Program-made: the position numbers and the translations under genes | Shown here: piece after piece, positions 19,096-62,638 of the stretch | Layout: every line of letters starts with the position of its first letter | How positions within the stretch are numbered: position 1 is the stretch's first letter | The notes under the pieces: generated by a model | Told to the model about the DNA's origin: nothing | The model's input: only the letters and a program-made list of their open reading frames with translations | Databases searched by the model: none | Assembly (NCBI GenBank): GCA_964035545.1 | Contig: OZ037771.1 | Span: 5,551,190-5,615,189 of the forward strand | Direction: 5' to 3' | DNA: 64,000 bases | From: Bugula neritina | Taxonomy: Eukaryota > Animalia > Bryozoa

Positions 19096-22000
19096 TCAAA
19101 TCCAATTTGAGACCTCAGATGGACGGTTACTTAGTGTTTCAATAAGTGTTTTGATAAACCCCTCCCTACTGTGACTACCAGCAGAGGTACTGCACACACC
19201 CACAGGCCATTCCAGATGCTTCTTGTCCATTATCAGTCTTGTGAGAAGTTTAGGAAGATGATCCAGTTGGGAGACAGAACTGATCCCAACTGTGATTACA
19301 AGAAGCTCACTCACTGGCTTCAATTTAATCAATTCAAACTCAAATTTAGTCACATCATCCTTCATGTAGTCTGGTGTGAGAAATATGATTGTTTTCGCAC
19401 TCTGAGCTATGAGCTTGGCTGTTGCTAATCTTGACATTTCACCCGGTAAAGTGTTTATTTCACTTGAGGTGATGGTAATGTTAAAACATTTGATCTCACT
19501 CAGCAACTCTAAAAAAACAAACACATATGAATCTGCATTGCAGTCATTGGATAGGAAAAAAGCTTTTCCACATGTTTTATTAAAATGATTGTCATTAGTA
19601 CTTCTTGGATAACATTAATTTTTATATGCCTATATAGATTTATCCAAATCTACTATCATTATACAGAGTATGTGATATAATTACCAATCAGTTTAGCAGT
19701 AAATCCATTTGTGTGACTGGCAAATACCCTACATTCTTCTGCAGCTAACGACCCTAATTTGTTTTGATAAAAACAAAGCAGCAGACTGTGGCGATTGAGA
19801 TACATCACAACTATTATAAAGAGTATTGAAACTGAAGCAATTGCAGTAGCAACACTGATTGTAACAAGCTGCTCTGATAATCCACCAGAAGTTTCTGTGC
19901 TGGTACTGACTGTTGGTGAGACATAGTAATCACTGATTGTCATATCTAATCCGTAGCAATAGAACTGAGAATCGCATTTAACAGCTGGAGATGTAAGCAG
20001 CCATTGGATATAATTAACGTGAGACTCATTGTTGGAGCATAGGACAGTGTTTCCTGTGAGATCAACATAAAAATTTTTATTCAATGATTGATTGTCAAAC
20101 TCATTTCGAAATTCTTCTTCAATGTAGTGAATGCTGTTGTTTATTAAGTTAAGGTATGTAAGTTTAAGGTTTTTAGAGATGGTGACGTTCCAACTAAAAA
20201 GTTCATTGCCATGGAGATCAAGATGGGTCAAGTCCGGGTGATGAGAGAAGAAGTTAAAGTCCGAAAAATATGAAATTCCTCCCGACTGTTGTCCAAGGTA
20301 AAGTTCTTCTAAAGCTGGAGCACCTCCTAAGAGCTCTCCATCTATATCATTCCTTAGCTTCTCACCAAGTTTATTTTTAGATAACTCCAAAGTTTTTATT
20401 GGAAAATTAGTCAGAAAATCTTGAGACCACCCACTGATATCGCAGTCAGTGCAAACCAGTTTTGAAAGATATTGAAATCCAGTTATATCTTTACATGATA
20501 TAAATCCTACTTGAGAGTGTGATAGTGTTATGGTTTTAAGATTATTGAGATAATTTACAATGTAAGAGCATAACGGATTTGCTTCATATTTTTGGGAATC
20601 TTCAGACAATGTGAAATCATTGTAATCAACGGCTAAAGTTGTCAGATGTGGAGGAAGAAAACGAAAATCGTTTTTTTTCGCTTCTAAAATGTCTTTCCAA
20701 TGATTTTCTATGTACTCCCAGTAATATCTTATAGTGAAATCTACAGCTTCATTGGACACATGTTCAATTTTGTCGTGTCTGATGTAATCTATAGCATAGT
20801 ACACTACAATGTCTTGATTAAAACATGACAACAGAGTTAAAGTGTTTTGATTACATTTGTATTCAAGGTAGTCCACAAGCTTAATAAAAACATAAAATTC
20901 AAGTATGTCAGGATTGTGAGTTACATTCCAGTTAAACTCATCTTCAGTAAACAAATAACTATCTTGGTTACAATCTAGAAGATCTGGGTAATAGTTGCGT
21001 CCATCACACGAATAGTCTTTGGCCATACCACGAAATGCAATGTAACGAATGAAAGGTGTCTGAAATTCCATGTTAAAGAACAGGGCTAAAACAGATGCGC
21101 GTAAGAGTTGATCTTCTGCAAAACCTGCCACCTGCAAAGAGGAATAGTTTAATTCGTTTTGGCTAATGTCAAAGTATAGCAGTCCTTGACAATACTTTCG
21201 TAAGTTGAGAGATGTTGGAGTTTGTATGTGATTGGCTTGTGCTGACAACACTTGTAGCGGAACTGTGGACAGAGGAGCTATGTCACCATTGTTAATATCC
21301 CACCAGCAGAAATCTATACCCTTCTCCGGAATGTTTATATGGTCTAGTAAGAGTGTGTGAAGTTTACTGTATGCTATTCCGTTAACAATTTCATGAAGAT
21401 GTTCTCTCAGTGGATTACAGGAAAGGTCAAGTTTTAGCAAGGAACTTATAAAACTTTTTAGAAACTCTTTATTAATAAGATTTACACCACAGTTTCTGGC
21501 AGAGAAACGTTTCAAGGGCAAAGTAAGAAGAGGCGACATAGAGGTGTCAGTCAATTCTGGCGTATCACAGTCAGGCCCACCTACAAATGAAAATACTAGT
21601 AACCTCTTATTTTTAAGTTCTAAATCACTTTTACTCATCCTAGGCAATGTTGTAACAATAAAAGATATATAGATTTCGGTTACACCAGCTACTTATAAGT
21701 TTGGTGAAAATCTCGGCTGAGAAGGCTGCATTATTTTTTGCTGATTCAAAAAAAGAAACTTTATGCTTTTTTTATATATTATGTATAGTTGATAGGCAGC
21801 TACCTGTCTGTATTTATTATTTGATGCTACATACTTTTTGAAAGAGCTTTTCTGTTGCTTTACATACCTTGCAAAGGATGTGAATGTCTTTTAGCCAGCA
21901 CATACATATAGTATATTACACAAAAAGACACTTATTTCTTTTGACATGGAAAAATTTTAGCTACTAACATTAGTATTTCAACTCAGCCAAAATTAGTTTC

Positions 22001-25192: not shown

Positions 25193-26757
25193 TAGGGTTA
25201 AGTTTCTCCTTTTTTATTAGTTTCATGTTTTTCAGTACTTTTTTTACTAGTACTTGTCATTTTTGTTATTTATTACTATTTAATTCACTATTTCTATAAA
25301 TCTATATCAATTATATATGTACTAAATACTGATATTTCAGCACTAGTATAGGGTTACTAGACATGATAACCAGTTTTTCTTCTGAGTGTTTAGATTTGGA
25401 ACAATTAGTCAAGGTGGCACGTGGCATGACTCATTGATGATCGAAGTCACAGTAGCACCTCAAGGGTGTATTATACAAAAAGGTTGCTTTGATTCAAGTA
25501 GCTCAATATTACTAGCATTATTATTGGTGTCAATGCAAATAATAACTGTTTACTATGCTACCTCTTTAGTGACAAGAATAGCTGCAATGACAATATGGGC
25601 GGTTTTCTAACGTTTTCATTATAGTAACCAGCAATGATAGTAAGCGGTATTTTTTACCATTTGATAAAGAGTTGAACGAGTTTTATGAAAATGGTTTTAC
25701 ATTTATTGATTAGTCTTTGAATTTAAAGATCTCAAGCTGTCACTAATACGCATGTAGAAACCATCAATTAAATGGTCTGGGCTGGAAAATATTTTTTGGA
25801 TAGTGGAACTTAACCCTCAGTCCCACATCTTACCAATGGGTGGGTGGGGGGGGGGGTCCGATTGGATCCCAGAGGGTATTTGGTATTGTGGAACATGTAC
25901 TATTTTTATCAGTATGTAAGAGAATGCCCTTGAGTCTAATGAGTATGGGTATACCACTTATTTGTCAGTGAACATAATATGGGTGCAACAATCTTACAAT
26001 CATGTTATATTTGATCTTATTCTGTTAACTTGGAGTTATCCTTTCCTGATATTGTAGCTGTTCAATGTACATGCAGTTTTGAACCTAATAGTTATTTCTA
26101 GATTAGATTGCAAAGCTACACAGCTTTGAACGTTTTGCTAAGACTTAGAAAGATATTATTAGTTAGCACACAGAGTTTTTCACTTTTAGTTTGCTAAAGC
26201 CTTACAAATTCTGATATATTGAACTAAAGTAAGTATTGTACTAAATAGATACAAATTTGCCATGATTTTAAGATTACCTCCCTTGTTCCACAAGAGAAGT
26301 AATTTTTAAACTAACATACGTACAACAGAACATAATTGATATCACATATGCAACTGAATTATATGTTTGAGATTACACTTGCAGCTATCAAAAATGTTGA
26401 AGATACAATGCATGATAATTATATAGGCAGACACATGCTGACTTGCATATTATTATTAAAAGCATAAATAATTGTTTCACAATACAAATAGCATAACCAT
26501 GTAATTGGCAAACACTTCAACATTGTTAATATTGATAATGGCTATAATTCTAGTTATAGCATGTCAATATGTATAACTGGCTTGTTCAAAATAGATGAGA
26601 ATTTAGTAACATGCATTGATCTCAGCTTATGTTCTTGGTTGACAGACGTAAAAAATATCTCAAACCCAAATATTTGCAGTTTTTAAATATTTCAGCGAAT
26701 TAAAATTTTGCATAAAGTTAATTACTTCATTATCTGATTTTTAAATTAAATCCAATT

Positions 26758-29700
26758 TTAGACCTCAGATGAACGGTTACTCAGTGTTTCAACAAGTGTT
26801 TTGATAAACCCCTCCCTGTTGTGACTACCAGCAGAGGTACTGCACACACCCACAGGCCATTCCAGATGCTTCTTGTCCATAATCAGTCTTGTGAGAAGTT
26901 TAGGGAGATGATCCAGTTGGGAGACAGAACTGATACCAACTGTGACTACAAGTAGCTCACTTGCTGGCTTCAGTTTAATCAATTCAAACTCAAATTTAGT
27001 CACATCATCCTTCATGTAGTCTGGTGTGACAAATATGACACTTTTCCCACTCTGAGCTATGAGCTTGGCTGTTGCCAATCTTGACATTTCACCTGGCAAA
27101 GTGTTTATTTCACTTGAGGTGATGGTAATATTAAAACATTTGATCTCACTCAGCAACTCTAAAACAAAGAAAACACGTCAGATTAGTAGAAGTGTCCCTG
27201 AATGCTTCAGTTTAATGAGTGACATGAGCGCTTTTTGAATTAGAATTTGCCCTCTATGCAACTATATTGTACATTTTAAATGAAGATTTTTACTAAACAG
27301 AATACATGAAATAATTACCAATCAATTTAGGCGTGAAGTCATTTGTGTGACTGGCAAATGCCTTACATTCTTCTTTAAGAATTTTGCTTTGGTAAAACCG
27401 AAGTAATAAATTGGGCCAACTAAAATATATCATTGCGATTAGGAAGAGTATCAGAGCTGCAGCAATTGCTGTAGCAACACCGATTGTAACTAGCTGTTCT
27501 GATTGTTCACCAGAAGAGTCTGTGCTGGTACTAACAGTTAGTGAGTCATAGTAATCACTGATTGTCATATCTAATCCGTAGCAATAAAACTGAGAATCAC
27601 AATTAACAGACGGAGATGTTAGCAGCCAGTGGATATAATTAACGTGAGACTCATTGTTGGAGCATAGGACAGTGTTTCCTGTGAGATCAACAACAAAATT
27701 GTTATTCAATGATTGATTGTCAAATTCATTTCGAAATTCTTCTTCAATGTAGTGAATGCTGTTGTTTATTAAGTTAAGGTAATTAAGTTTAAGGTTTTTA
27801 GAGATGGTCAGGTTCCAACTAAGAAGTACATTGCCATGGAGATCAAGATGGGTTAAGTTTGGTTGATGAGAGAAGAAGTTAAAGTCTGAGAAATACAAAA
27901 TTCCTCCTTCCTGATTTCCAAAGTGAAGCTCTTCTAAAGTTGGAGCACCTCCTAAAAGCTCTCCAGTTACATCGTTTCTTAATTTTTCACCAAATTTATT
28001 TTTAGTCAGCACTAAAGTTTTGACTGGGAAGTTAGTCAGAAAGTCACGAGACCACCCAACAATACTGCAGTCAACACAAACCAGTTTGGAAAGATATTTA
28101 TATCCAGTAATATTGCGGCATGATACAAATCCAACTTGAGAGTATGACAGAGTTATGGTTTCAAGATTATTGAGATACATTTTAGCGTAAGAGCATAGTG
28201 GAATTGGTACATTTTTTTGGACATCTTCAGACAAGATGAAATCGTTATAATCAATAGCTAAAGTTGTCAGATGTGCAGGGACAAAGTGAAAATTAATTCT
28301 TTCTCTGTTTAGCAATGTATGAACAACACGATCCCAGTAATACCTTACTGTAAAGTTTACAGCTTTATCTGACACATAATCGATTCCTTGTGTTCTGATA
28401 TAATCTCTAGCATAGTTGATCACATTTACTCGATTTAAACATAACAATGAACATTTCCTTTGAAGATGGTGCATAAGTTGATTGAAAACATGGATGTCAA
28501 CTATGTCAGGATTGTGAGTTACATTCCAATCAAACCCATCTTCAGTGAACAAATAACTATCTTGGTTACAATCAAGAAGATCTGGGTAGTAGTCGTGTCC
28601 ATTGCATGAATAATCTTTAGTCATACCGCGAAATGCAATGTAGCGAATGAAAGGGGTCTGCAGTTCTGTGTTGTAGAACAATGCTTTGACAGATGATGGT
28701 AGCTTTTGACCTTCTGCATTACTCGATACTTGCAGAGAAGAATGGTTTAACTCATTCTGACTAATATCCAGATATAGCAGTCCTTGACAGTACTCTCGCA
28801 AGTTTAGGGTTTCTGGAGTTTGTATGTGGTTCGCTTGCATGGACAAAACTTGTAGTGGAATTGTAGAAAAGGGTCTGATGTCATCATTGCTGACTCCCCA
28901 CCAGCAGAAATCTGTATTCTTTTCTGGAATGTTTATATGGTCAAGTAAAAGTGTGTGGAGCTTACTGTTTGCTATCCCGTTAACAATTTCAGAGAAGTGT
29001 TCTTTTAACGGATTACAGGAAAGGTCAAGTCTTAGTAGAGAATTTGTAAAAATTTTTAGGAATTCTTGATTAATACTATTTACACGACAATTTCTGGCAG
29101 AAAAACGTTTCAAGGGCAAACTTGAAAAAGGCAGCATTGAGATGTCGGTCAACTCTGGAGTATCACAGTCAGACCCACCTACAAAAAAATATTATTAATT
29201 AAATTACTTGTTTAGAAAATACTTAGACCAGTATAAAAAAGCAGCTACTCATTCTAAACAATGTGGTAAAGGTAATAATTGGCTATAGCTGTCAGGTACA
29301 CTCAGACCGCCGTTATAATTATTTCCTGAGTAAAACACGGGAGAATATTTTGATAAAGAATCTAGAAATTTAGAAAATTTTGATTTGTGCTAATCATTAC
29401 ACCACGGGAACCACTGGTAAATTTAACACTATACTTTTGATTTTATTTATTATTGTGACATATTGTTGTGTAACATAAATGCAAAACAGCAAAGCAATAC
29501 TTTAGCAATATTTCTGTATTGCTAAGAAAAACTCAATTTAACTTTGTTTTACAAAAATAAACTTTTCCACGGCTTAAACTAATGACACAGAAAAATAAAC
29601 ATATCTCTAAGTTAATTACTGAACATTTTTTATGATCACACTCAATCAGGAATATTTCCTTGAGCATGACTAATATTAGCACCATGTTACCTATAGCATA

Positions 29701-34843: not shown

Positions 34844-35568
34844 TTAAACTTTGCCTAGGGTGTTGAAGACACTTATAGGATCAAATCGTCTCATATTGTT
34901 GTAGTGGTGGTGAAAAGCACACAGTCTATATATAACATGATGACGGAAAACATAGAGAACTATAACAATGATAGCAGCTATTACAGAAAACAAAATGATT
35001 AAAATGAGGTTTTTCTGTAAAATATCTTTTGTCTCAGTAAAGCTAGAAAGTTTTTCAACTTCACTTGAGATAATTGATGTCGTCGGATTGTTGTAAAATA
35101 ATTGTTATCTTCCGTTGTTTTCAAAGTGATAATTGTTGTAGAGTCAGAACTTTTGCTCTTATAATCAAAGTTTTGTCACAAACTTTTTGAAAAAATTTTT
35201 AGATACAAAACAAAACTATTGTTTGGGGCTGAGTAGGGGCTGGGGCTTGGTGTGCCTGTAATAAACAGCTCCTCTAAAGATTTGTGTAGCGGATATAACT
35301 CCAAATAGGCATAGCCATGTGCTGGTGGGTAGTTCTGCTTCATTCTTTAACCACATGGTGCAACATGTGAGACAAATTGATTTTGTAGAGTGCTGTGGCT
35401 AGTCATTCTAAGACAGGTCAAGTAATATAGGTGCTGCTGCTGCTTATAGGAAAGGAGCAGCAGCAACTGGGTAGCAGTGCTTACTATTGCCGTAGATATG
35501 CCTACAGAGCAAAAGATCATGCTAAGCAGCACAATGTGCCTTATAGTCTGATTGGTGTTGCAACTCAT
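34844..35568 (-). pseudogene. Decayed TLR-like (LRR-TM, TIR-less) pseudogene
   Basis: 84-nt signal exon; exon-3 homolog (MKQN..PAHGYAYLELYPLHKSLEELFITGTP); Ser/Thr stalk; TM LILIILFSVIAAIIVIVLYVF-RHH; contains stops and a frameshift. Confidence 0.65.
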
Positions 35569-39934: not shown

Positions 39935-42900
39935 TCAGATATGATTCGAGACCTCAGATGAATGGTTACCCAGTGTTTCAACAAGTGTTTTGATAAACCC
40001 CTCCCTGTTGTGACTACCAGCAGAGGTACTGCACACACCCACAGGCCATTCCAGATGCTTCTTGTCCATAATCAGCTTTGTGAGAAGTTTAGGAAGATGA
40101 TCCAGTTGGGAGACAGAACTGATCCCAACTGTAACGACAAGTAACTCACTCGCTGGCTTCAATTTAATCAATTCAAACTCAAATTGAGTCACATCATCCT
40201 TCATGTAGTCTGGTGTGAGAAACATGACTGCTTTCCCACTCTGAGCTATGAGCTTGGCTGTTGCTAATCTTGACATTTCACCCGGTAAAGTGTTTATTTC
40301 ACTTGAGGTAATGGTAATGTTGAAACATTTGATCTCACTCAGCAACTCTAAAACAGAACAAAAACATATAGATCTGCATTGCATTTAAACTTTAGTGTAG
40401 CAAAAATGTCTGCTCATGTTCCATTAAAACATGTGTCATTAGTGCTTCTTGAAGAATACGAGTTACTTCTTATATATATATTTATGCAAATTTACCATTA
40501 CTATACAGAGTATGTGATATAATTACCAATCAGTTTGACGGTAAACCCATTTGTGTGACTGGCAAATGCCTTGCACTCTTTCAAAGTTGAAGACCCTAAT
40601 TTGTTTTGATAAAATCGAAGCAACAGACTGTGGCGATTGAGGTACATCATTGCTATCAGAAAGAGTACTAAAACTGTAGCAATTGCAGTAGCAACACTGA
40701 TAGTAACAAGCTGTTCCGATTGTCCACCAGAAGACTCTGTGCTGGTACTGACTGTTAGTGAGTCATAGTAATCACTGATTTTCATATCTAATCCGTAGCA
40801 ATAAAACTGGGAGTCACATTTAATAGCTGGAGATGTAAGCAGCCAGCGGATATAATTAACGTGAGACTCATTGTTGGAGCATAGGACAGTGTTTCCTGTG
40901 AGATCAACAAAAAAATTGTTATTTAATGATTGATTGTCAAATTCATTTCGAAATTCTTCTTCAATGTAGTGAATGCTGTTGTTTACTAAGTTAAGGTAAT
41001 TAAGTTTAAGGTTTTTAGAAATGGTGATGTTCCACCTATGAAGTTCATTGCCATGGAGATCAAGATAGGTTAAGTTCGGGTGATGAGAGAAGAAGTCAAA
41101 GTCTGAAAAATACAAAATCCCTCCTTCCTGATTTCCAAAATGAAGCTCCTCTAAAGCTGGAGCACCTCCTAAGAGCTCTCCTGTTATATCATTTCTTAAT
41201 TTTTCACCAAATTTATTTCTAGTGAACACTAAAGTTTTGACTGGGAAGTTAGTCAGAAAGTCACGAGACCACCCAACAATACTGCAGTCAATGCAAACCA
41301 GTTTGGAAAGGTATTGAAGTCCAGTAATATTGCGACATGATATAAATCCAACTTGAGAGTATGACAGAGTTATGGTTTCAAGATTATTGAGATACATTTC
41401 AATGTAGGAGCATAGTGGATTTGCTTCATTCTTTTGGAAATCTCCAGACAAGGTGAAATCGTTATAATCAATAGCTAAAGTTGTAAGATGTGCAGGGACA
41501 AAGTGAAAATTAATTTTTCCTCTGTTTAGCAATGTAGGAACAACACGATCCCAGTAATATCTTACTGTAAAATCTACAGCTTTATCGGACACATAATCGA
41601 TTCCTTGTGTTCTGAAGTAAACTGTAGCATAGTAGATCACATTTTCTTTATGTGAACATAACAATAAAGTAAAAATGTCGTATGAACATTTCTTTTGAAG
41701 ATGGTTCATAAGTCCGTTGAGAACATGGATGTCAACTATGTCAGGATTGTGAGTTACATTCCAATCAAACCTATCTTCAGTGAACAAATAACTATCTTGG
41801 TTACAATCTAGAAGATCTGGGTAATAGTTGCGTCCATCACATGAATACTCTTTAGTAATACCACGAAATGCAATGTATCGAATGAAAGGGGTCTGAAGTT
41901 CTGTGTTGTAGAACAATGCTTTGACAGATGATGGTAGCTTTTGACCTTCTGTATTACTCGATACTTGCAGAGAGGAATGGTTTAGCTCATTCTGACTAAT
42001 ATCCAGATATAGCAGTCCTTGACAGTACTCTCGCAACTTGAGGGTTTCTGGAGTTTGTATGTGGTTCGCTTGCATGGACAAAACTTGTAGTGGAATTGTA
42101 GAAAAGGGTCTGATGTCATCATTGCTGACTCCCCACCAGCAGAAATCTGTATTCTTTTCTGGAATGTTTATATGGTCAAGTAAAAGTGTATGGAGTTTAC
42201 TGTTTGCTATCCCGTTAACAATTTCAGAGAAGTGTTTTTTCAATGGATTACAGGATAGGTCAAGTCTTAGTAGAGAATTTGTAAAACTTTTTAGGAATTC
42301 CTGATTAATACTATTTACATGACAATTTCTGGCAGAGAAACGTTTCAAGGGCAAACTTGAAAGAGACCACATTGAGATGTCGGTCAACTCTGGAGTATCA
42401 CAGTCAGGCCCACCTACAAAAAATTATTATTAATTAAATTACTTGTTTATATAATACTTGGACCAGCATAAAAAAGCAGCTACTCATTCTAAACAATGTG
42501 GTAAAGGTAATAACTGGCTATAGCTTTCAGGTACACTCAGACCGCTGTTATAATGATTTCCTGAGTAAAACACGGGAGAATATTTTGATAAAGAATCTGG
42601 TGGGTTGGTTAGAAAATTTTGATCGGTTATTTGATATTTTGTGATCTTAAAAAAGAGCTTTCTGTTGTTACAGTTGAGTTTCAGAATCTACTTATTTAAC
42701 TAGAAAAAATATTAGATGAAGAAAAAAACTTTTTTAGCATGCTTAAATTATTTGCAGAATGTTATATAAAGTTTCAATTATACTGACATAAGTTTTGCAT
42801 TTTAATCTAATGAGTCCTTAAAATTTTAAAGTTTGAAGTTTTAAGTAAAATGGCCATCATTTGTTTCACTTAACAATAAAGCTATATGCAATATTTGACA

Positions 42901-45500
42901 AACGAAGTTTTAAAACTATAAATATCATAAGCTTCTCACCGTACCATGGCGCAATCAAAAATCATTGAAAGTTGAAAATATTTAGATCATTATTATTAGC
43001 AAACACAGTAAACATGTTTCACAAGCTGATTTTATTTTGTACTAGTGTAATTTAATGTAATCACACAAGGAAATCTTTAGTTAGACAACAGAAATTTAAA
43101 TTTTTATAATTATGTTGATACCAATAGCAGCAGGAGGTAGATACCATATATTTATACACATTGATGACAAAAGCTCACAGTGTGCTTTGGTTTTTGGGAG
43201 ATGTAAAAGCTGTTACTTATATTGCATTCTTAAAAATAACTTGTGTGCTCTATAACATATAGTCATCTTAAAGGTTAAAATTCTCAATTAGTTACTTTTT
43301 GAAAAATAATTGCCCCCACTGAGAATTGAACCCGAGACCTCTGGCAAGCAAGTGTCCTAACTATTACACCACGGGAACCACTGGTAAACTTAACACTATA
43401 CTTTTGATTTTATTTATTATTGCGACATATTGTTGTGTAACATAATTATATGCAAAACAGCAAAGCAATATTTTAGCAGTATTTCTGTATTGCTAAGAAA
43501 AACTCAATTTAACTTTGTTTTACAAAAATAATCTTTTTCACGGCTTAAACTAATGACACAGAAAAATAAACATATCTCTACGTTAATTACTGAACATTTT
43601 TTATGATCACACTCAATCATGATTATTTCCTTGAGCATGACTAATATTAGCACCATGTTACCTATAGCATATCCTCATAGCAACTTAATATATATTTTAC
43701 TATTAAACTTATCTATTTCAACATTTTGTGTTTATTGTCCATATAAGGCAGTTTACACTTTTTTTTACATCAACTGACACTAAACACATAAATTTAGGTT
43801 ACTCACCAATGCTCAATGTGTGTAGTCTATGAAATTCTGTAAAGACTGTGCTAAATGCTGGGGTTCCAATCAAGTAAAGTTCTTCTAGTGAGTTGTTGAG
43901 AGGAGCCAAGGCTGAATAATCAAACTCCTGAGCAGGTCTGTGACCGTCTTTCTGTTTCAGTCTACAAGTCGGGCAAACACAGTTCACACAAAGCAATTAA
44001 CTATAATGGCCATGAAAAGTTCGGCAGAAGTCTAAATTTTGGAGATTATACCAGTAATTTTTAATGACATTTAACTGGTTCTCGCTTGCAATAAAAATAA
44101 GCATATTAAGTGTTTTTATACCCCTACTAAAAGAACATGACTTAATATGTAATTTACAGAAACAGCTCTGCATCATTAGCATCAGAAATTTCTATTTATA
44201 TTGCAATTTATATGCATGCATTTTACAGACAGTTTAAGCTGAGTGATTTTAAAGGGTAATCTTCCTACAGCTAACTTTTTTTGGAAGAAGAACATTATAA
44301 TACGCTCAATTAGTACTATATACAATATCCTAATTTTGCTTAAATGTAACTTATGTTTTTTCTCTAAATATAGGAATTCTTAATAGTCTTTTTATTCTAT
44401 TTGCCGCCATTGATTTAATGAAATTATTTGCTATAAAATATGTACCTGAGTGTCTTCAGAGTTGTCAGTCCTTTGAATGAGTCTCTACTGATAGTTTCAT
44501 TAGAAAGTAGAATATTGTTGAAAGAGATGTTAAGATGTAAGAGCCGTGTATTGGAGGCAAATACGAAGGGACTAATGAATGAAATCTTGTTGTAGGAGAG
44601 ATCAAGAGATTCAAGGTCAGTGAAAGGTGAAAGGTCAGGTATGCTGTTGAGATGATTGTGATTAAGTTTGAGTACTCTGATACCAGTTGTATTGAGAGTT
44701 GGTGGTACAGAGAACTGTGTTATTTGACTATCACTACAGTCCATGACACCAGGTATATCACAGGTACATCTCTCTATCTCACAGGGTTTGCCACACTGTC
44801 TTCTTTCAACAAACTATAAAATAACGATGTGAATATGATAATTTTAGTTACCTAAGATGGTACATGATGAAAAAAGCAAAAATAATTTTAGAATTTGGCA
44901 TAGAATTTATGTTCATGTCTGACCCTTTCTCAGATTTATTACTATTCATTGAAATCGTTACTTCCTTGTACTTTATTGAAATACGTAATCTGTGTAACCA
45001 TAGAAACAGTATTTTACTAGCAGCCAACTTTTAAACTGTTTCCAAAGACTTTTGGTTCAGGTGTATGAGTTTCAAAACACAGTTTAATTGTTTGTATTAA
45101 ACAAAGATATTGCATCATATGTTACAAAGCTGCAATATTCTAGTGCTATACCATTAATTTATCTTACGCAAACAAGCAAAAAATGTAAAAGATATCTAAA
45201 TGGTTTATTACAGTAAATATTATAATCACCAGTAATTCAACCTTCAATAATTTGGAAATTCTAATCAAAAGTAGTAATGGTGGTGTCTTCAAATTGATAT
45301 TAACTAGTAGAAGGAAAAGGAATATAAAGAATCGACTATTTATCTACTTGTGAACTCTTAACATTTGTATAGACTAGCATTTATTGGTAATACCTAAGCT
45401 ATATGTTACTTCTATATAGTTAATTCATCTAATTGGATTATTTTCTACACTCAGTAGTTGAGAGTAGTTTTACCTTTTTTTAGTTTACACCACACACACA

Positions 45501-45551
<51 letters not shown>

Positions 45552-45981
45552 ACACACACACGCATACACACAACACACACACACACACACGCATAACACC
45601 ACACACAACACACTTAACACTAAGCACTAAGCACACACCACACACCACACACCACACACACACAAGCACTAAGCACACACGCGCACACACACACAAATAC
45701 ATTATATACACAAGCACACAGATGCAGTAAAATAACATACTAAATTTTTTAAGTGCACAGATATAGTAGCTCTAAATAATAACGCAGGTACTGCAGGTAT
45801 TTAGGCAAACACTGCTGCTAGCCATGAAGAAGAGAATACATAACGTTATCTAATATATAGCTTTTTCTCAAATTATATATATAGTACTTGAACTTACCTG
45901 GCTATGTACTCGACAAATATTACAAAGTAAAAACAGCAACAATGTATATGCATAGCACAGTCTGTAAACACAGCCACCCAT
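39935..45981 (-). CDS. Toll-like receptor copy 3, ~968 aa; exons 45981-45898, 44813-44446, 43961-43807, 42413-40527, 40347-39935
   Basis: Exon sizes 84/368/155/1887/413, GT/AG, open frame; LRR-TM-TIR. Confidence 0.93.
43312..43376 (-). repeat. tRNA-derived fragment (pseudo-tRNA/SINE head) in TLR3 intron 3
   Basis: Homolog of 59855-59920 with a mutated B box. Confidence 0.5.
45486..45695 (+). repeat. Imperfect (CA)n microsatellite in TLR3 intron 1
   Basis: Directly visible. Confidence 0.95.
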
Positions 45982-48746
45982 GGTGACAGCTAGTTGATAA
46001 ATGATGAGCATGTGCTCATAGTTTAGCCATGTGGTTGTCTAAATAGCTTAAGCATCTGTTTCCTTGTTTCCTTGTTAAAATAACTGCTATTTCTTAGTGA
46101 GAAACTGGTTTTGCTTTATCAAAAAAATATTCAATAAGAATTTAATTGGATCAAAACCAGATGCACTGCTTTAGCTACTCTTTGTCGTGGTTGCTACTGT
46201 ATTTTTTGATGTTTATTATGCAGTTATATTATAGCAACGACAATATAGATTAGACAGCATAATAATAAAGGACTGTATTTATTCAAACGCAAGAATGTGA
46301 CAAGTAAAACTTTGAGATGCAACTGCAAAAAGGTTAGCTAGTTAGCTGGTCTAGTTTAAATATAAATTGCTGCTGTAGCTATAGCATTCATATAGTGATA
46401 CCAAACAAGATCTCTATACACTGTATGATTTTATACTTTTAATATGATTAGGTAATTAGTAATTTTTACTGCATTATCAATAATGTCATCGTCTGAACAA
46501 CAAGCAAACGGCTATCAGTTTGCAATATATTATAATATAGTATAATATATATTTTGCTTATAATACCAATTTACAATATCATCATTTAACAATAAATTAA
46601 AGAATAGAAGCTCTTATAATAAGTGTTGAAGCAATGACATGGCTGTTACCGAATTGGCATTAAAAATGAATTTCAGAAATTAACAGCGCTGTTTAAAACC
46701 ATACTTTTCCTTTATTTGAATGCTAAAATAGCACTAATCAATAATGTACTTTATTTAAAATTAGTTATTATTACGAGATTATATTCTTCTTGAAATATAG
46801 GAAACATTTGAAGCAACAATTTTATAATATGCAGTTATCCTCAAGCATGATATCGTCATTTTTAAAATTAGGTATGATCTTAGCATATAAATAAATGGAT
46901 ACAATTTGAGCTTATTTGTCAACAACAATTTTTTTTTTTGGTTGATTTTGCAAAAAGAGTTGCACTCTACTTTAATTTTTCTGCGAGATTTAACAATTTC
47001 CTTCACACCCATGACTGCAGATGCAGTAAATGATTATTGTATAAACAGAGCTAGTGGTTGTTAGCATCATGGATTACCATATGTTAAACTTACATGACCT
47101 TAAATATAGACAATTATAGACAATAGCTGTAATGCAGTACAAATAATATTACTCTGACTACTGGAGCAGTTATACTGGAAGTCTGTGGACAAGTAAATCA
47201 AAGCCTTTGCAACTTAGTGATGCATGAATAATTCATTCACTATCAAATTACTGTATATAGTAGATAATGTCAAATAAAACATGGGAGACAACTATCAATC
47301 TACTGTAAAAAAGTCAAACATGCTGCTAAAGGTTTTTCTCAAATCTATGAGCTATCTAGACTTCCATGGCTCACAAGTGCAAATACCATTAGCAATACTT
47401 CAATCTATGCACTGATACTAATAATTGCGGAATGGCTGTTCACTGTTGTGTATAAGTTTGATAATAAATCTGCCTACTTGAATGCTCTTATAGGTAAAAA
47501 AACATTTACGTAAAATAACCACCAGGAAAAATACCATTGCTAGTTTTTGACAAACGTATGACTATAATCACCTCTTTGGATTATTTTGTCAAGGGAAAAT
47601 GAATATAATTAGCATACAGTTTTTGAGGAAATAGAAACAGTTTCTTAAGCTAAAACCTATTATACGCAGCCGAGTAAAATGAACTGTTAACGAAAACCAA
47701 TTCCACTAAATATTGCATATCAAGCAGCAAAAAATTGTAACTATACCGACAATGGATCAGTTGTCAAAAGCCATGAATAATAATTTTAGTATTGCTGCGT
47801 GAAGGCTAGACAAGAAAATGTTTTCCAGTAACTACCATATAGTGGATCTATTTATAGATAATTGGTTAGGTGCTAGAAGTAACAGATAACAATTTGGGGT
47901 TCAAGTTCTTACAGAACACAATACATGTTTTGTAATCTATTGTACTCCTAGGCTGATGGTTCACATCGCAAAGGTTTGTAGAAAAATATGGCTGTTTTTA
48001 GCAACACACATAAACTTCTAACAGATCAAAAATATTTGTCTCCGACGTTTATAACTGCCAGCTGCAACAGACAGTTTTTATAAATGAAAATGTTTCAATG
48101 TAGACAGACTTATACACTGTAGATTATTTTTTATTTCATCTTATAACAAAATGCAGCTTGAATTGTGTGATTATCCAGATAACATGAGGTCTATCACAGT
48201 TATATTCTCTTGTTTTAGAATGCAGATTGAAAACATTTGTAATTTTGCTAAAGTGAAAAAATTTAGAAATTAGGTCAAAAAGCAGATGAAAAATTAAGCT
48301 TTATATTACCCACTAGCATAAAAGAGCAACTGCATTGAATAGCTGGCAAGAGGCACAGAAGTTGTATTGCTCATATTTAGGTTAGCGAGTTATTTTAGCA
48401 ACTAATAATGCATTACATAAAGGAAATATTATAAACTAAGGAGAACAGGTTTTTTGTAAACATAAATATTGTTACCATGGTTGCGCCACTTGACAATACT
48501 ATATAATTATAATATAGCAATAAAATCATAGATGAATTGATAACTGTTTCATAATGCATCCATTACTATTGTAGTATTATCACTAGTTCTAAATCTATAC
48601 AAGTTATTATAATGTATAATTATTGCACTTTAGCAACACAGTCATGCATGTCATTAAGTGCGTTGTATACCAGAATATGCAGCTTGCAGTACATTACAGA
48701 GACTAACTACTTAACTTTTACATTAATATGTCTATTTATTCTCCAA

Positions 48747-49448
48747 GTTAAACTTTGTCCAGGGTGTTGAAGACACTTATAGGATCAGAACGTCTCATAT
48801 TGTTGTAGTGGTGGTGAAATGCACACAGTCTATATATAACACGATGACGGAAAACAGCTATTACAGAAAACAAAACGATTAAAATGAGGTTTTTCTGTGA
48901 AATCTCTTTTGTCCCAGTAAAGCTAGAAAGTTTTTCAACTTCACTTGAGATAATTGATGTCGTCGGATTGTTGTAAAATAATTGTTATCTTCCGTTGTTT
49001 TCAAAGTGATAATTGGTGTAGAGTCAGAACTTTTGCTCTTATAATCAAAGTTTTGTCACAAACTTTTTGAAAAATGTTTTAGATACAAAACAAAACTATT
49101 GTTTGGGGCTGAGTAGGGGCTGAGGCTTGGTGTGCCTGTAATAAACAGCTCCTCTAAAGATTTGTGTAGCGGGTATAACTCGGAATAGGCATAGCAATGT
49201 GCTGGTAAGTAGTTCTGCTTCATTCTGTAACCACATGGTGCAACATGTGAGACAAATTGATTTTGTAGAGAGCTGTGGCTAGTCATTCTAAGACAGGCCA
49301 AGTAATATAGGTGGTGCTGCTGCTTATAGGAAAGGAGCAGCAGCAACTGGGTAGCAGTGCTTACTATTGCCGTAGATATGCCTACAGAGCAAAAGATCAT
49401 GCTAAGCAGCACAATGTGCCTTATAGTCTGATTGGTGTTGCAACTCAT
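48747..49448 (-). pseudogene. Second copy of the decayed TLR-like pseudogene
   Basis: Paralog of 34844-35568; the 130-aa ORF reads from the signal exon through to the exon-3 homolog; the TM segment carries a ~23-bp deletion. Confidence 0.65.
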
Positions 49449-54054: not shown

Positions 54055-55428
54055 TCAACATTGCAGATCCAGCAATTTTAACCTAGTAATATCAGCTATA
54101 CCAAGCAAATTTTCAGTAGAGTTTTCCAATACATAAATCTTGGTATCCACAAATCTGTTGAAGTCGCCAATGCAAACCTTAGCTCTGCCTAGCACATTCA
54201 CCAAAGACTTATCAACACCTGTAATATGCTTATCTGGTTCCTTTAATTTAATGTTCAGCTTTTCTGCAGTCGCCTCAGTAAGTGTAGAAACCTCAGACCC
54301 AGTATCTAGCAAGAATTCTACACGTCTACCACTAACTAATAAAGTCCTTGTTATTTTAGGACTGACATTGTGATTATAAGTCCCATCACTCTTTGTAGAA
54401 AACTTCACTGATTTTAGGGAGTCCATAACTCCGATCCTGTTTTCTCTTTGTTCCACATATCTCTTTTTGTGATGATATCTTTTGTTATCAGAACAATCTT
54501 GAGCAATGTGGCCGAATTCCTTGCACATGTAGCAACGGGTTTTAGGACAGTTTCTCACATAATGCCCTGTACGGTCACATCTAAAGCATCTGCCATAACT
54601 TTTGTAAGCATTTTGCGATTTATAACTACAATGTTGATATGAATGACATGCCTCTTTTTTCTTTGAAAAAGAGTTGTCTCTATTGATAGAAGTTGTCTTA
54701 TCATAATTAGATCTATGTAGAACTTTATCTCTTTTCTTACAGTGTTCTGAGCTATCATTAGCTCGGTAAGAATATGTGAGTCTACCAATTGACTGTTCAT
54801 CTATGCATTCATTGTTTATTGCATTTAAAGCATCCTCAGAAAGTTTACTTAAATGTGCAGCACGACTTTTTCTTTTCAGTTGTTCCCAGCTTAGGTTAGC
54901 ATGCTGTAACAAATATCTGCGTAACCCTGAATTTCTTAGACCATTAACTGCTAGTGCGACTGCAAATCCCATTCTAACATCATCATTATTGCCAAAGTTT
55001 ATTGCTCTACTTAGCTTCTCAACTCTTAGCAAATAATCAATTTCATTTTCTCCACAAGATTGGGTCACAGTGACAAATTTCATGGTTTTCACATAAAATG
55101 TATCATCTCTATCATAGTGAGATTGCAGTAAGTCTAAGGCTAACTCATATCCATCATCAGAGTTATTATTCAAATCAAAGCCTAATGATTGTAAAGTATC
55201 AAGACCTTCTGACCCTACAGCTCCTAACAGAACTAAAAGCTTTCTCCTACCTCTAAATCTGCTAACCTGTTCATCTCCTACTACTTCAAACCCTGCATTA
55301 AGGGAAGTAACTTCTATACTCAATTTAAATTGAATGAGCCATGAGTTCCAAGATTTGGTTATGTTGCTTTCATCCAACTTTAATTTAGGAAAAGCATTAA
55401 GGTCTAATTTGATGTCTCCATGAGCCAT
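54055..55428 (-). CDS. gag: Retrotransposon Gag (two CCHC zinc knuckles) fused to aspartic protease, ~457 aa from ATG 55428
   Basis: CFRCDRTGHYVRNC and CYMCKEFGHIAQDC knuckles; FLLDTGSEVS active site and LLG motif; stop immediately after the protease. Confidence 0.9.
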   Translation of the reverse strand: MAHGDIKLDLNAFPKLKLDESNITKSWNSWLIQFKLSIEVTSLNAGFEVVGDEQVSRFRGRRKLLVLLGAVGSEGLDTLQSLGFDLNNNSDDGYELALDLLQSHYDRDDTFYVKTMKFVTVTQSCGENEIDYLLRVEKLSRAINFGNNDDVRMGFAVALAVNGLRNSGLRRYLLQHANLSWEQLKRKSRAAHLSKLSEDALNAINNECIDEQSIGRLTYSYRANDSSEHCKKRDKVLHRSNYDKTTSINRDNSFSKKKEACHSYQHCSYKSQNAYKSYGRCFRCDRTGHYVRNCPKTRCYMCKEFGHIAQDCSDNKRYHHKKRYVEQRENRIGVMDSLKSVKFSTKSDGTYNHNVSPKITRTLLVSGRRVEFLLDTGSEVSTLTEATAEKLNIKLKEPDKHITGVDKSLVNVLGRAKVCIGDFNRFVDTKIYVLENSTENLLGIADITRLKLLDLQC

Positions 55429-55734
55429 ACTACAGGTAAGCACTTTTATTACAGTAAATGAAACAATTTAATTTTAAGCAGCTATCTCGTGATTATGCAC
55501 TGTACTCTCAGTTTCAACCTCTGGGCATCCGTGTCTCTCAAAGTTTAATTCTCGGTTCCTTTCGCCGGCACTCTTATTCTGAATCTATTAGTATTATTTA
55601 TAAATTGCTCAAAAGTCAACACTCACCACCTTTCTCAACAAGCCTCTCAACTCTTTTTCCCAAAAATAAACCTCTGAAGTCTAGTAAACTCCAAACAACA
55701 CACTTCTCTCTTTTGTAACTCTTGTCTCCTCAAT

Positions 55735-56468: not shown

Positions 56469-62638
<6,170 letters not shown>

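Follow-up and report, generated by a model that had tools for sequence, protein, structure and literature searches.

The stretch of Bugula neritina DNA analyzed here, a window of 64,000 nucleotides (GenBank assembly GCA_964035545.1, contig OZ037771.1, positions 5,551,190 to 5,615,189), carries a tandem array of predicted Toll-like receptor (TLR) genes. Inserted between two blocks of leucine-rich repeats (LRRs) in each encoded ectodomain is a segment of about 125 amino acids (aa), referred to below as the island. The DNA is AT-rich (G+C 30-38%), and across the window its minus strand holds four long open frames of 619-662 aa, each of which is the large exon of one five-exon gene. Over these big open frames, copies 2-4 of the tandem array share 73-75% identity with copy 1. 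Exons were placed by tblastn searches of the window with annotated Bugula neritina proteins. Of the three exons upstream of the large one, the first encodes the signal peptide, the second the LRRNT with LRRs and the third, a short one, further LRRs; they were mapped for copy 3 and have equivalents upstream of the other three copies. A TIR exon follows about 170 bp downstream (Table 1).

In Pfam searches, the large and upstream exons matched LRR_8, LRR_4 and LRR_1, and the last exon matched TIR. The full-length receptor, as represented by public Bugula and Watersipora proteins rather than by spliced window genes, comprises a signal peptide, LRRNT, about 11 LRRs, the island, about 8-9 further LRRs, a putative LRRCT and single membrane span, and a TIR domain of divergent sequence. 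The putative span was read from the sequence: some 23 hydrophobic residues follow a Cys-containing cap (helices 516-527 and 546-557), for which Pfam gave no LRRCT match. Single TIR sequences scored 17.4-22.8 bits against Pfam TIR (cut-off 21.3; copy 1 reached 22.8) and 25-26 bits against TIR_2 (cut-off 28). A profile built from four cytoplasmic sequences of the family matched TIR domains in the PDB with E values of 5e-6 to 2e-2, including those of IL-1RAcP (4.9e-6), of TLR10, TLR1 and TLR6 (2e-4 to 1e-3), and of MyD88, and the four-sequence family alignment shows no variation at the P-G of the BB-loop motif. The combination of an LRR ectodomain, a putative membrane span and TIR profile matches indicates a single-cysteine-cluster TLR architecture; by their predicted domain content, the genes are TLRs of this type plus the island.

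The initial annotation of the locus had recognized a stretch of about 125 aa without LRR consensus between an LRR strand ending in FRG[MI] and the next LRR starting with P[PA]HL. We find this stretch in all four copies, within a few bases of where it had been marked. Its division into a nearly invariant start and a variable segment with two Cys and the indels is likewise borne out by alignment: the first ~45 aa (N-module) are almost invariant among the four copies, and the remainder carries the two Cys, dense substitutions and both indels of the ectodomain part of the large exon, the sole other indel of this exon being cytoplasmic. The 6-aa deletion in copy 2 lies exactly within the loop between the two Cys and converts C-x9-C into C-x3-C, and the 3-aa insertion in copy 1 is located after the last helix. 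As to the segment being amphipathic and rich in aromatic residues, amphipathic helices are indeed predicted, but the aromatic enrichment is only modest (F/W/Y content of 16% versus 11%).

Comparison of 21 homologues revealed a consistent layout of the island in spite of a length that varies from 122 to 160 aa. The first Cys pair (C-x10-11-C) is near-universal. Its second Cys is followed by a motif in which Ser and Trp never change and Leu, Phe, Asp, Pro and Ile hardly vary. A heptad-like hydrophobic periodicity is kept throughout the helical module of about 70 aa. Most homologues have a second Cys pair, with a loop of 3-12 residues between the two Cys; several lack this pair, and the module contains either two Cys or none. 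The island also carries N-glycosylation sequons, which fits an extracellular location.

Structure prediction with AlphaFold2 (AF2) was applied to the ectodomain part of the copy 3 large exon (window 40711-42414, 568 aa, 21-sequence alignment) and yielded a model with a mean predicted local distance difference test score (pLDDT) of 84.3 and a predicted template modeling score (pTM) of 0.84. LRR strands run up to model residues 180-182 and are back from 312-314. The island begins with coil and one short helix (residues 183-228, pLDDT 75-88), followed by five helices at residues 229-243, 247-252, 256-269, 277-287 and 292-296 (pLDDT 84-91). AlphaFold and Foldseek had been named in the initial annotation as a check on its non-LRR reading of the segment, and the outcome agrees with that reading, as no strand is predicted over 128 residues. 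When the island was modeled alone, the same five helices were obtained (pLDDT 78-93), and the confidence of the N-module fell to 50-58. The N-module thus seems to need the solenoid for its order and probably anchors the insert to it. Flexible stretches (pLDDT 47-57) are predicted at the island tail and directly after it. In addition, short loops at model residues 151-158 and 324-334 (pLDDT <50) break the LRRs before and just after the island; the second of them follows the first post-island LRR and varies in length across homologues.

Foldseek searches with the whole model returned TLR7, TLR3 and TLR9 on top, together with the ectodomains of TLR8, RP105, TLR2 and TLR5 (E ~1e-7). VIA-align superposed 366 residues (model 1-554) onto a 393-residue C-terminal fragment of mouse TLR9 at 3.2 Å (Z 20.3), with similar results for RP105, TLR4, TLR7 and TLR8 (Z 18-20). 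The number of superposed residues is about what remains of the model once the island and the low-confidence loops are subtracted, indicating that the LRR blocks form one continuous horseshoe from which the island is an excursion and not a break. Overall, the models support a folded non-LRR domain within a TLR-type ectodomain.

The closest public proteins are hypothetical proteins of Bugula neritina (72-87% identity) and a Watersipora subatra protein annotated as 'toll-like receptor 4' (36%). Members from Watersipora keep the island at 36-38% overall identity. Within the island, homologues are only 20-33% identical to copy 3. An exhaustive search of 1.84 billion representative proteins with a profile of 11 islands gave 11 matches, all in the same LRR receptor context; the named organisms among them are Bugula and Watersipora, and the other matches stem from ENA, Logan or JGI assemblies. 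The island is present in every family member found, and a search of the window's own genome revealed neither a donor nor a stand-alone copy. At the level of profile searches, these results show the island to be restricted to this lineage. On a public Bugula neritina contig (VXIV02002975.1) several family members lie next to each other, and a 1465-aa gene model there may represent two fused neighbors.

Searches for relatives of the island outside the family gave no match of weight. Pfam searches with the 11 islands at E values up to 10 produced scattered chance matches only and no LRRCT, LRRNT or SapB, a Foldseek search of the PDB with the island had no match at E below 2, and the ESM Atlas, queried by shape and by features, returned nothing consistent. 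A PDB sequence-profile match to the IMP-specific 5'-nucleotidase of Plasmodium falciparum (E 1e-3, 22 bits) is probably compositional and was rejected, since nothing corroborates it. In a VIA-align comparison with 48,161 PDB representatives, saposin-like proteins ranked weakly at or near the top with near-full coverage (71-79 residues): the helical module aligned with Na-SLP-1 at Z 6.1 (79 aa, 4.3 Å), NK-lysin at 5.6, granulysin at 5.2 and saposin D at 4.9, all below the noise bar, as helical bundles reach Z 13 by chance. We did not accept a saposin-like identity, as Z does not exceed 6.1, the six-Cys signature is lacking and the SapB sequence signal is absent; the resemblance is a lead and not a result.

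The initial annotation had further taken the island for the variation hotspot of the ectodomain and had looked to a ratio of nonsynonymous to synonymous rates (dN/dS, omega) above 1 within it for support. The hotspot is confirmed by higher dN, omega, tree length, entropy and indel density than in the flanking LRRs. In Nei-Gojobori comparisons of copy 1 with copies 2-4, dN reaches 0.42-0.45 in the variable half, while the LRR blocks show 0.10-0.16; pairwise omega is 0.46-0.81 in the variable half, 0.15-0.5 in the LRR blocks and 0.1-0.3 in the conserved N-module. Maximum likelihood (ML) estimates under GY+F3X4, fitted per partition to a codon alignment of eight sequences (six distinct paralogues of the window's own genome and two public Bugula neritina genes), a small set from a family with recombination, gave omega values of 0.30 for the N-terminal LRRs, 0.44 for the conserved island module, 0.61 for the variable module, and 0.35 each for the C-terminal LRRs and for the region from LRRCT to the membrane span. 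The value for the variable module is above that of the flanks (twice the log-likelihood difference, 2dlnL, 8.7-10.7; p 0.001-0.003). It is also significantly below 1 (2dlnL 6.8, p 0.009), and the expected excess over 1 was thus not borne out. The codon tree of the variable module is about 2.5 times longer than those of the flanks, with 4.5 substitutions per codon versus 1.7-1.9 in the LRR and LRRCT-to-membrane-span partitions and 1.2 in the conserved module.

The same picture emerges from the 21 homologues. Mean column entropy is 2.38 bits in the helical part versus 1.43-1.52 bits in the LRR blocks, indel events per 100 residues number 78 versus 15-16 (about 5-fold), and of the eight 25-residue windows that vary most, the top six lie at residues 226-275. 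The helical module is the variation hotspot of the protein. By these estimates the conserved first third of the island, on the other hand, is as constrained as the LRRs. For the orthologous pair of copy 1 and a Bugula neritina gene, omega of the variable module is only 0.37 (12 nonsynonymous and 7 synonymous changes; dS of the best orthologue pair 0.11-0.18), indicating that most of the divergence lies between paralogues. With omega below 1, this low orthologue value, the preserved hydrophobic pattern and retention in Watersipora, the island is, as judged from its sequence, maintained and not junk.

Divergence is also unevenly distributed along the genes. By its N-terminal LRRs copy 2 falls in with copies 3 and 4, whereas its island and C-terminal LRRs place it with a paralogue outside the window; synonymous divergence is strongly uneven along the gene. 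Between copies 2 and 3 (27293-29152 and 40501-42387), the LRRs and island have diverged at dS 0.12-0.16, the LRRCT, membrane-span and juxtamembrane region at dS 0.72. The heterogeneity of dS and the differing topologies of the partitions suggest that genes of the cluster have undergone gene conversion or unequal crossing-over, and these sequence patterns show that segments have in all likelihood been swapped between paralogues.

Our favored reading, to which we assign a probability of roughly 0.6, is that the island is a lineage-restricted, folded helical insertion domain and that it provides a recognition surface specific to each paralogue. The conserved N-module would anchor the insert to the solenoid, and the helical module would present the paralogue-specific surface to a ligand or co-receptor. 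Such a surface might be diversified by tandem duplication, segment exchange between paralogues, loop indels and fast surface substitution, with the hydrophobic core and the anchor remaining constrained. Ligand-binding and decoy roles, as put forward in the initial annotation, are inferences. In TLR ectodomains the LRR surface itself is thought to recognize the ligand, with short loops or separate co-receptors such as MD-2 in a supporting role. A family-specific, folded helical insert of about 125 aa whose evolution is fastest between tandem paralogues would diversify a TLR in a different way.

Several points weigh against a recognition surface. Region-level positive selection was not detected in pairwise comparisons, in the ML analysis or when core and surface sites of the helices, as defined from outgroup homologues only, were treated separately; surface-site omega then ranged from 0.23 to 1.4 on small counts. 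A raised omega below 1 is also expected under relaxed constraint, and the AF2 model rests on an alignment of just 21 sequences. The main rival explanation, which we regard as possible if somewhat doubtful, draws on the same observations: the island could be a tolerated spacer, i.e., a folded but passive insertion under relaxed constraint, with recognition left to the LRR surface as in other TLRs. Besides the raised omega of 0.61, it would account for the lack of any sequence pair with omega significantly above 1 and for the tolerance of different island lengths. A passive spacer is harder to reconcile with an anchor motif and a hydrophobic pattern that are kept even where islands share only 20-33% identity with copy 3, with the orthologue omega of 0.37, and with the fact that no family member has lost the island. 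An omega that is raised but stays below 1 leaves this explanation with some probability.

A bolder version of the recognition surface is that the island represents a new extracellular recognition domain, perhaps a saposin-like binder of lipids or amphiphiles, which is built directly into the TLR horseshoe. We consider this rather unlikely. If true, the receptors would be co-factor-independent bryozoan sensors diversified among paralogues, an animal counterpart of the islands of plant LRR receptors. They would also form a TLR subtype specific to bryozoans, within a genus for which surveys record no TLRs.

There is even less reason to regard the island as an analogue of the Z-loop, that is, a regulatory insertion which must be cleaved by proteases for activation as in TLR7, TLR8 and TLR9. 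The mid-ectodomain site between LRR blocks, the presence of these three receptors among the closest structural relatives of the solenoid and the flexible stretches at and after the island tail would fit such a role. However, the island is 3-4 times longer than a Z-loop, a compact helical bundle is predicted with good confidence, and a furin-type R-x-K/R-R motif occurs in 0 of the 21 homologues, so that a Z-loop-like cleavage role appears unlikely from the models.

Fainter still is the case for a divergent internal cysteine cluster, in which the island would be a degenerate LRRCT-LRRNT junction of a protostome-type, multiple-cysteine-cluster (mcc) Toll. The four Cys are arranged in two pairs, and protostome Tolls commonly have an internal LRRCT-LRRNT (PMC8609888). 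Yet none of the 11 islands matches Pfam LRRCT or LRRNT at E values up to 10, the island is predicted to fold into five helices, for which fold searches give no LRR cap, the flanking LRRs superpose on a single continuous solenoid, and the second Cys pair is missing in several homologues. Least credible of all, ordinary degenerate LRRs that have lost their consensus would fit a length of ~125 aa (roughly five LRR units) and the short L-x-x-L-like strings readable in the N-module, but AF2 predicts long helices and no strand in both contexts, and neither the tolerated indels nor the Cys loop resemble what is seen in LRR units.

The four genes in the window belong to a larger cluster. A search of the same genome identified ten island-bearing genes in one cluster of about 93 kb, four in the window and six just outside. 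Two of the six (L009 and L010) are of a divergent type in which only the N-module of the island is still recognizable. Two others, L003 and L004 (G000:C7:5630264-5633650 and 5653587-5656973), are near-identical, and the open frame of their large exon (592 aa) stops inside the transmembrane segment. With L007/L008 and L010/L009, these two genes make up a block of three genes that occurs twice, about 23.3 kb apart, which is either a genuine segmental duplication or an artifact of the assembly. Two relic fragments lie between intact genes on the minus strand of the window (34850-35346 and 48754-49226). In each, a piece resembling exon 3 (52% identical) directly adjoins a stalk and transmembrane region of the divergent L009/L010 type (60-85% identical); both are without the entire LRR-island block and are either truncated pseudogenes or short LRR-less genes. 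Between copies 3 and 4, a 462-aa open reading frame (54055-55443, minus strand), in which Pfam recognizes two CCHC zinc knuckles as well as an aspartyl protease of retroviral type, marks a Gag-protease retroelement.

Table 1. Location of the receptor genes, their exons and the island (window positions unless a genome position is given).
Feature	Position	Strand	Remarks
Open frame, copy 1	19659-21647	minus	start at 21647
Open frame, copy 2	27293-29152	minus	
Open frame, copy 3	40501-42387	minus	
Open frame, copy 4	57033-58919	minus	
Exon 4, copy 1	19686-21584	minus	6 LRRs, island, 8-9 LRRs, putative LRRCT and membrane span, TIR start; Pfam LRR_8/LRR_4
Exon 4, copy 2	27320-29182	minus	
Exon 4, copy 3	40528-42417	minus	AF2-modeled part 40711-42414
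Exon 4, copy 4	57060-58949	minus	
Last exon (divergent TIR), copy 1	19099-19524	minus	Pfam TIR; family profile versus PDB TIRs
TIR exon, copy 2	26749-27165	minus	Pfam, tblastn
TIR exon, copy 3	39938-40354	minus	tblastn, Pfam
TIR exon, copy 4	56472-56888	minus	tblastn, Pfam
Exons 1-3, copy 3	43805-46020	minus	tblastn with Bugula neritina protein N-terminus; Pfam LRR on copy 1 equivalent
Signal peptide, copy 3	45898-46020	minus	
LRRNT and LRRs, copy 3	44445-44813	minus	
LRRs, copy 3	43805-43969	minus	
Island, copy 1	20643-21035	minus	131 aa; alignment, profile
Conserved N-module of island, copy 1	20904-21035	minus	about 44 aa; Cys pair and acidic/aromatic motif; C, S and W invariant in 21 homologues
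Variable helical module and tail of island, copy 1	20643-20903	minus	second Cys pair, 3-aa insertion; helices by alignment to copy 3 model
Island, copy 2	28268-28633	minus	122 aa; 6-aa deletion
Island, copy 3	41485-41868	minus	128 aa; modeled copy
Island, copy 4	58017-58400	minus	128 aa; 96% identical to copy 3
Ten-gene LRR-TM-TIR (TM, membrane span) tandem cluster (L001-L010)	19099-62689 and G000:C7:5.570-5.663 Mb		

Earlier surveys reported no TLRs in the transcriptome (PMC8609888) or in the genome (PMC10279657) of Bugula neritina, and full-text literature searches retrieved no paper on this family or on an island in an animal TLR. Given that the surveys report no TLRs from this species, the receptor family appears to be undescribed, in agreement with the idea of an undescribed TLR subtype put forward in the initial annotation. 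The surveys probably missed the family because its TIR and LRR Pfam scores are at or below thresholds and because the public gene models are fragmentary: these measure 599, 758 and 915 aa, and the 915-aa model starts inside the LRRNT and thus lacks the signal peptide. The cluster of ten genes with full predicted LRR-TM-TIR architecture, together with the Bugula neritina orthologues, corrects the record of these surveys.

Several known systems share individual traits with the bryozoan receptors. The mcc Tolls of protostomes likewise come from a protostome host and have mid-ectodomain Cys, but an internal LRRCT-LRRNT was not detected in the bryozoan proteins, whose solenoid is predicted to be continuous. 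Saposin-like proteins (SAPLIPs), lipid-binding domains that form compact bundles of four to five helices over about 80 aa, resemble the helical module in their amphipathic helices and Cys-bracketed hairpin, but have six conserved Cys in three disulfides where the bryozoan module has two or none. The islands of plant LRR receptor kinases such as BRI1 and PSKR1 are likewise non-LRR domains between LRRs, an analogy of design only and without homology. Plant islands fold onto the concave face, create the ligand pocket, measure about 36-70 aa and are not five-helix bundles. The bryozoan island is larger, and both the kingdom and the signaling domain differ.

The closest overall likeness is to vertebrate-type (single-cysteine-cluster) TLRs, above all TLR7, TLR8 and TLR9 with their Z-loop. 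The horseshoe, the TIR domain and an insertion in the middle of the ectodomain are common to both, and the bryozoan proteins have a putative membrane-proximal LRRCT and single membrane span in the corresponding places. The best structural matches of the solenoid are TLR9, TLR7, TLR8, TLR3, TLR4 and RP105. In contrast, the bryozoan TIR domain is highly divergent, with Pfam scores at or below threshold. In TLR7, TLR8 and TLR9 the Z-loop, short and flexible, connects LRR14 to LRR15 and undergoes proteolytic processing. The bryozoan insert follows about LRR11 of approximately 20, shows no sequence similarity to the Z-loop and, with 122-160 aa, is predicted to be folded and helical, as opposed to a flexible and cleavable loop of about 30-40 aa. 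The proposed design resembles the plant islands and, more loosely, the ligand-contacting Z-loop of TLR8 and TLR9.

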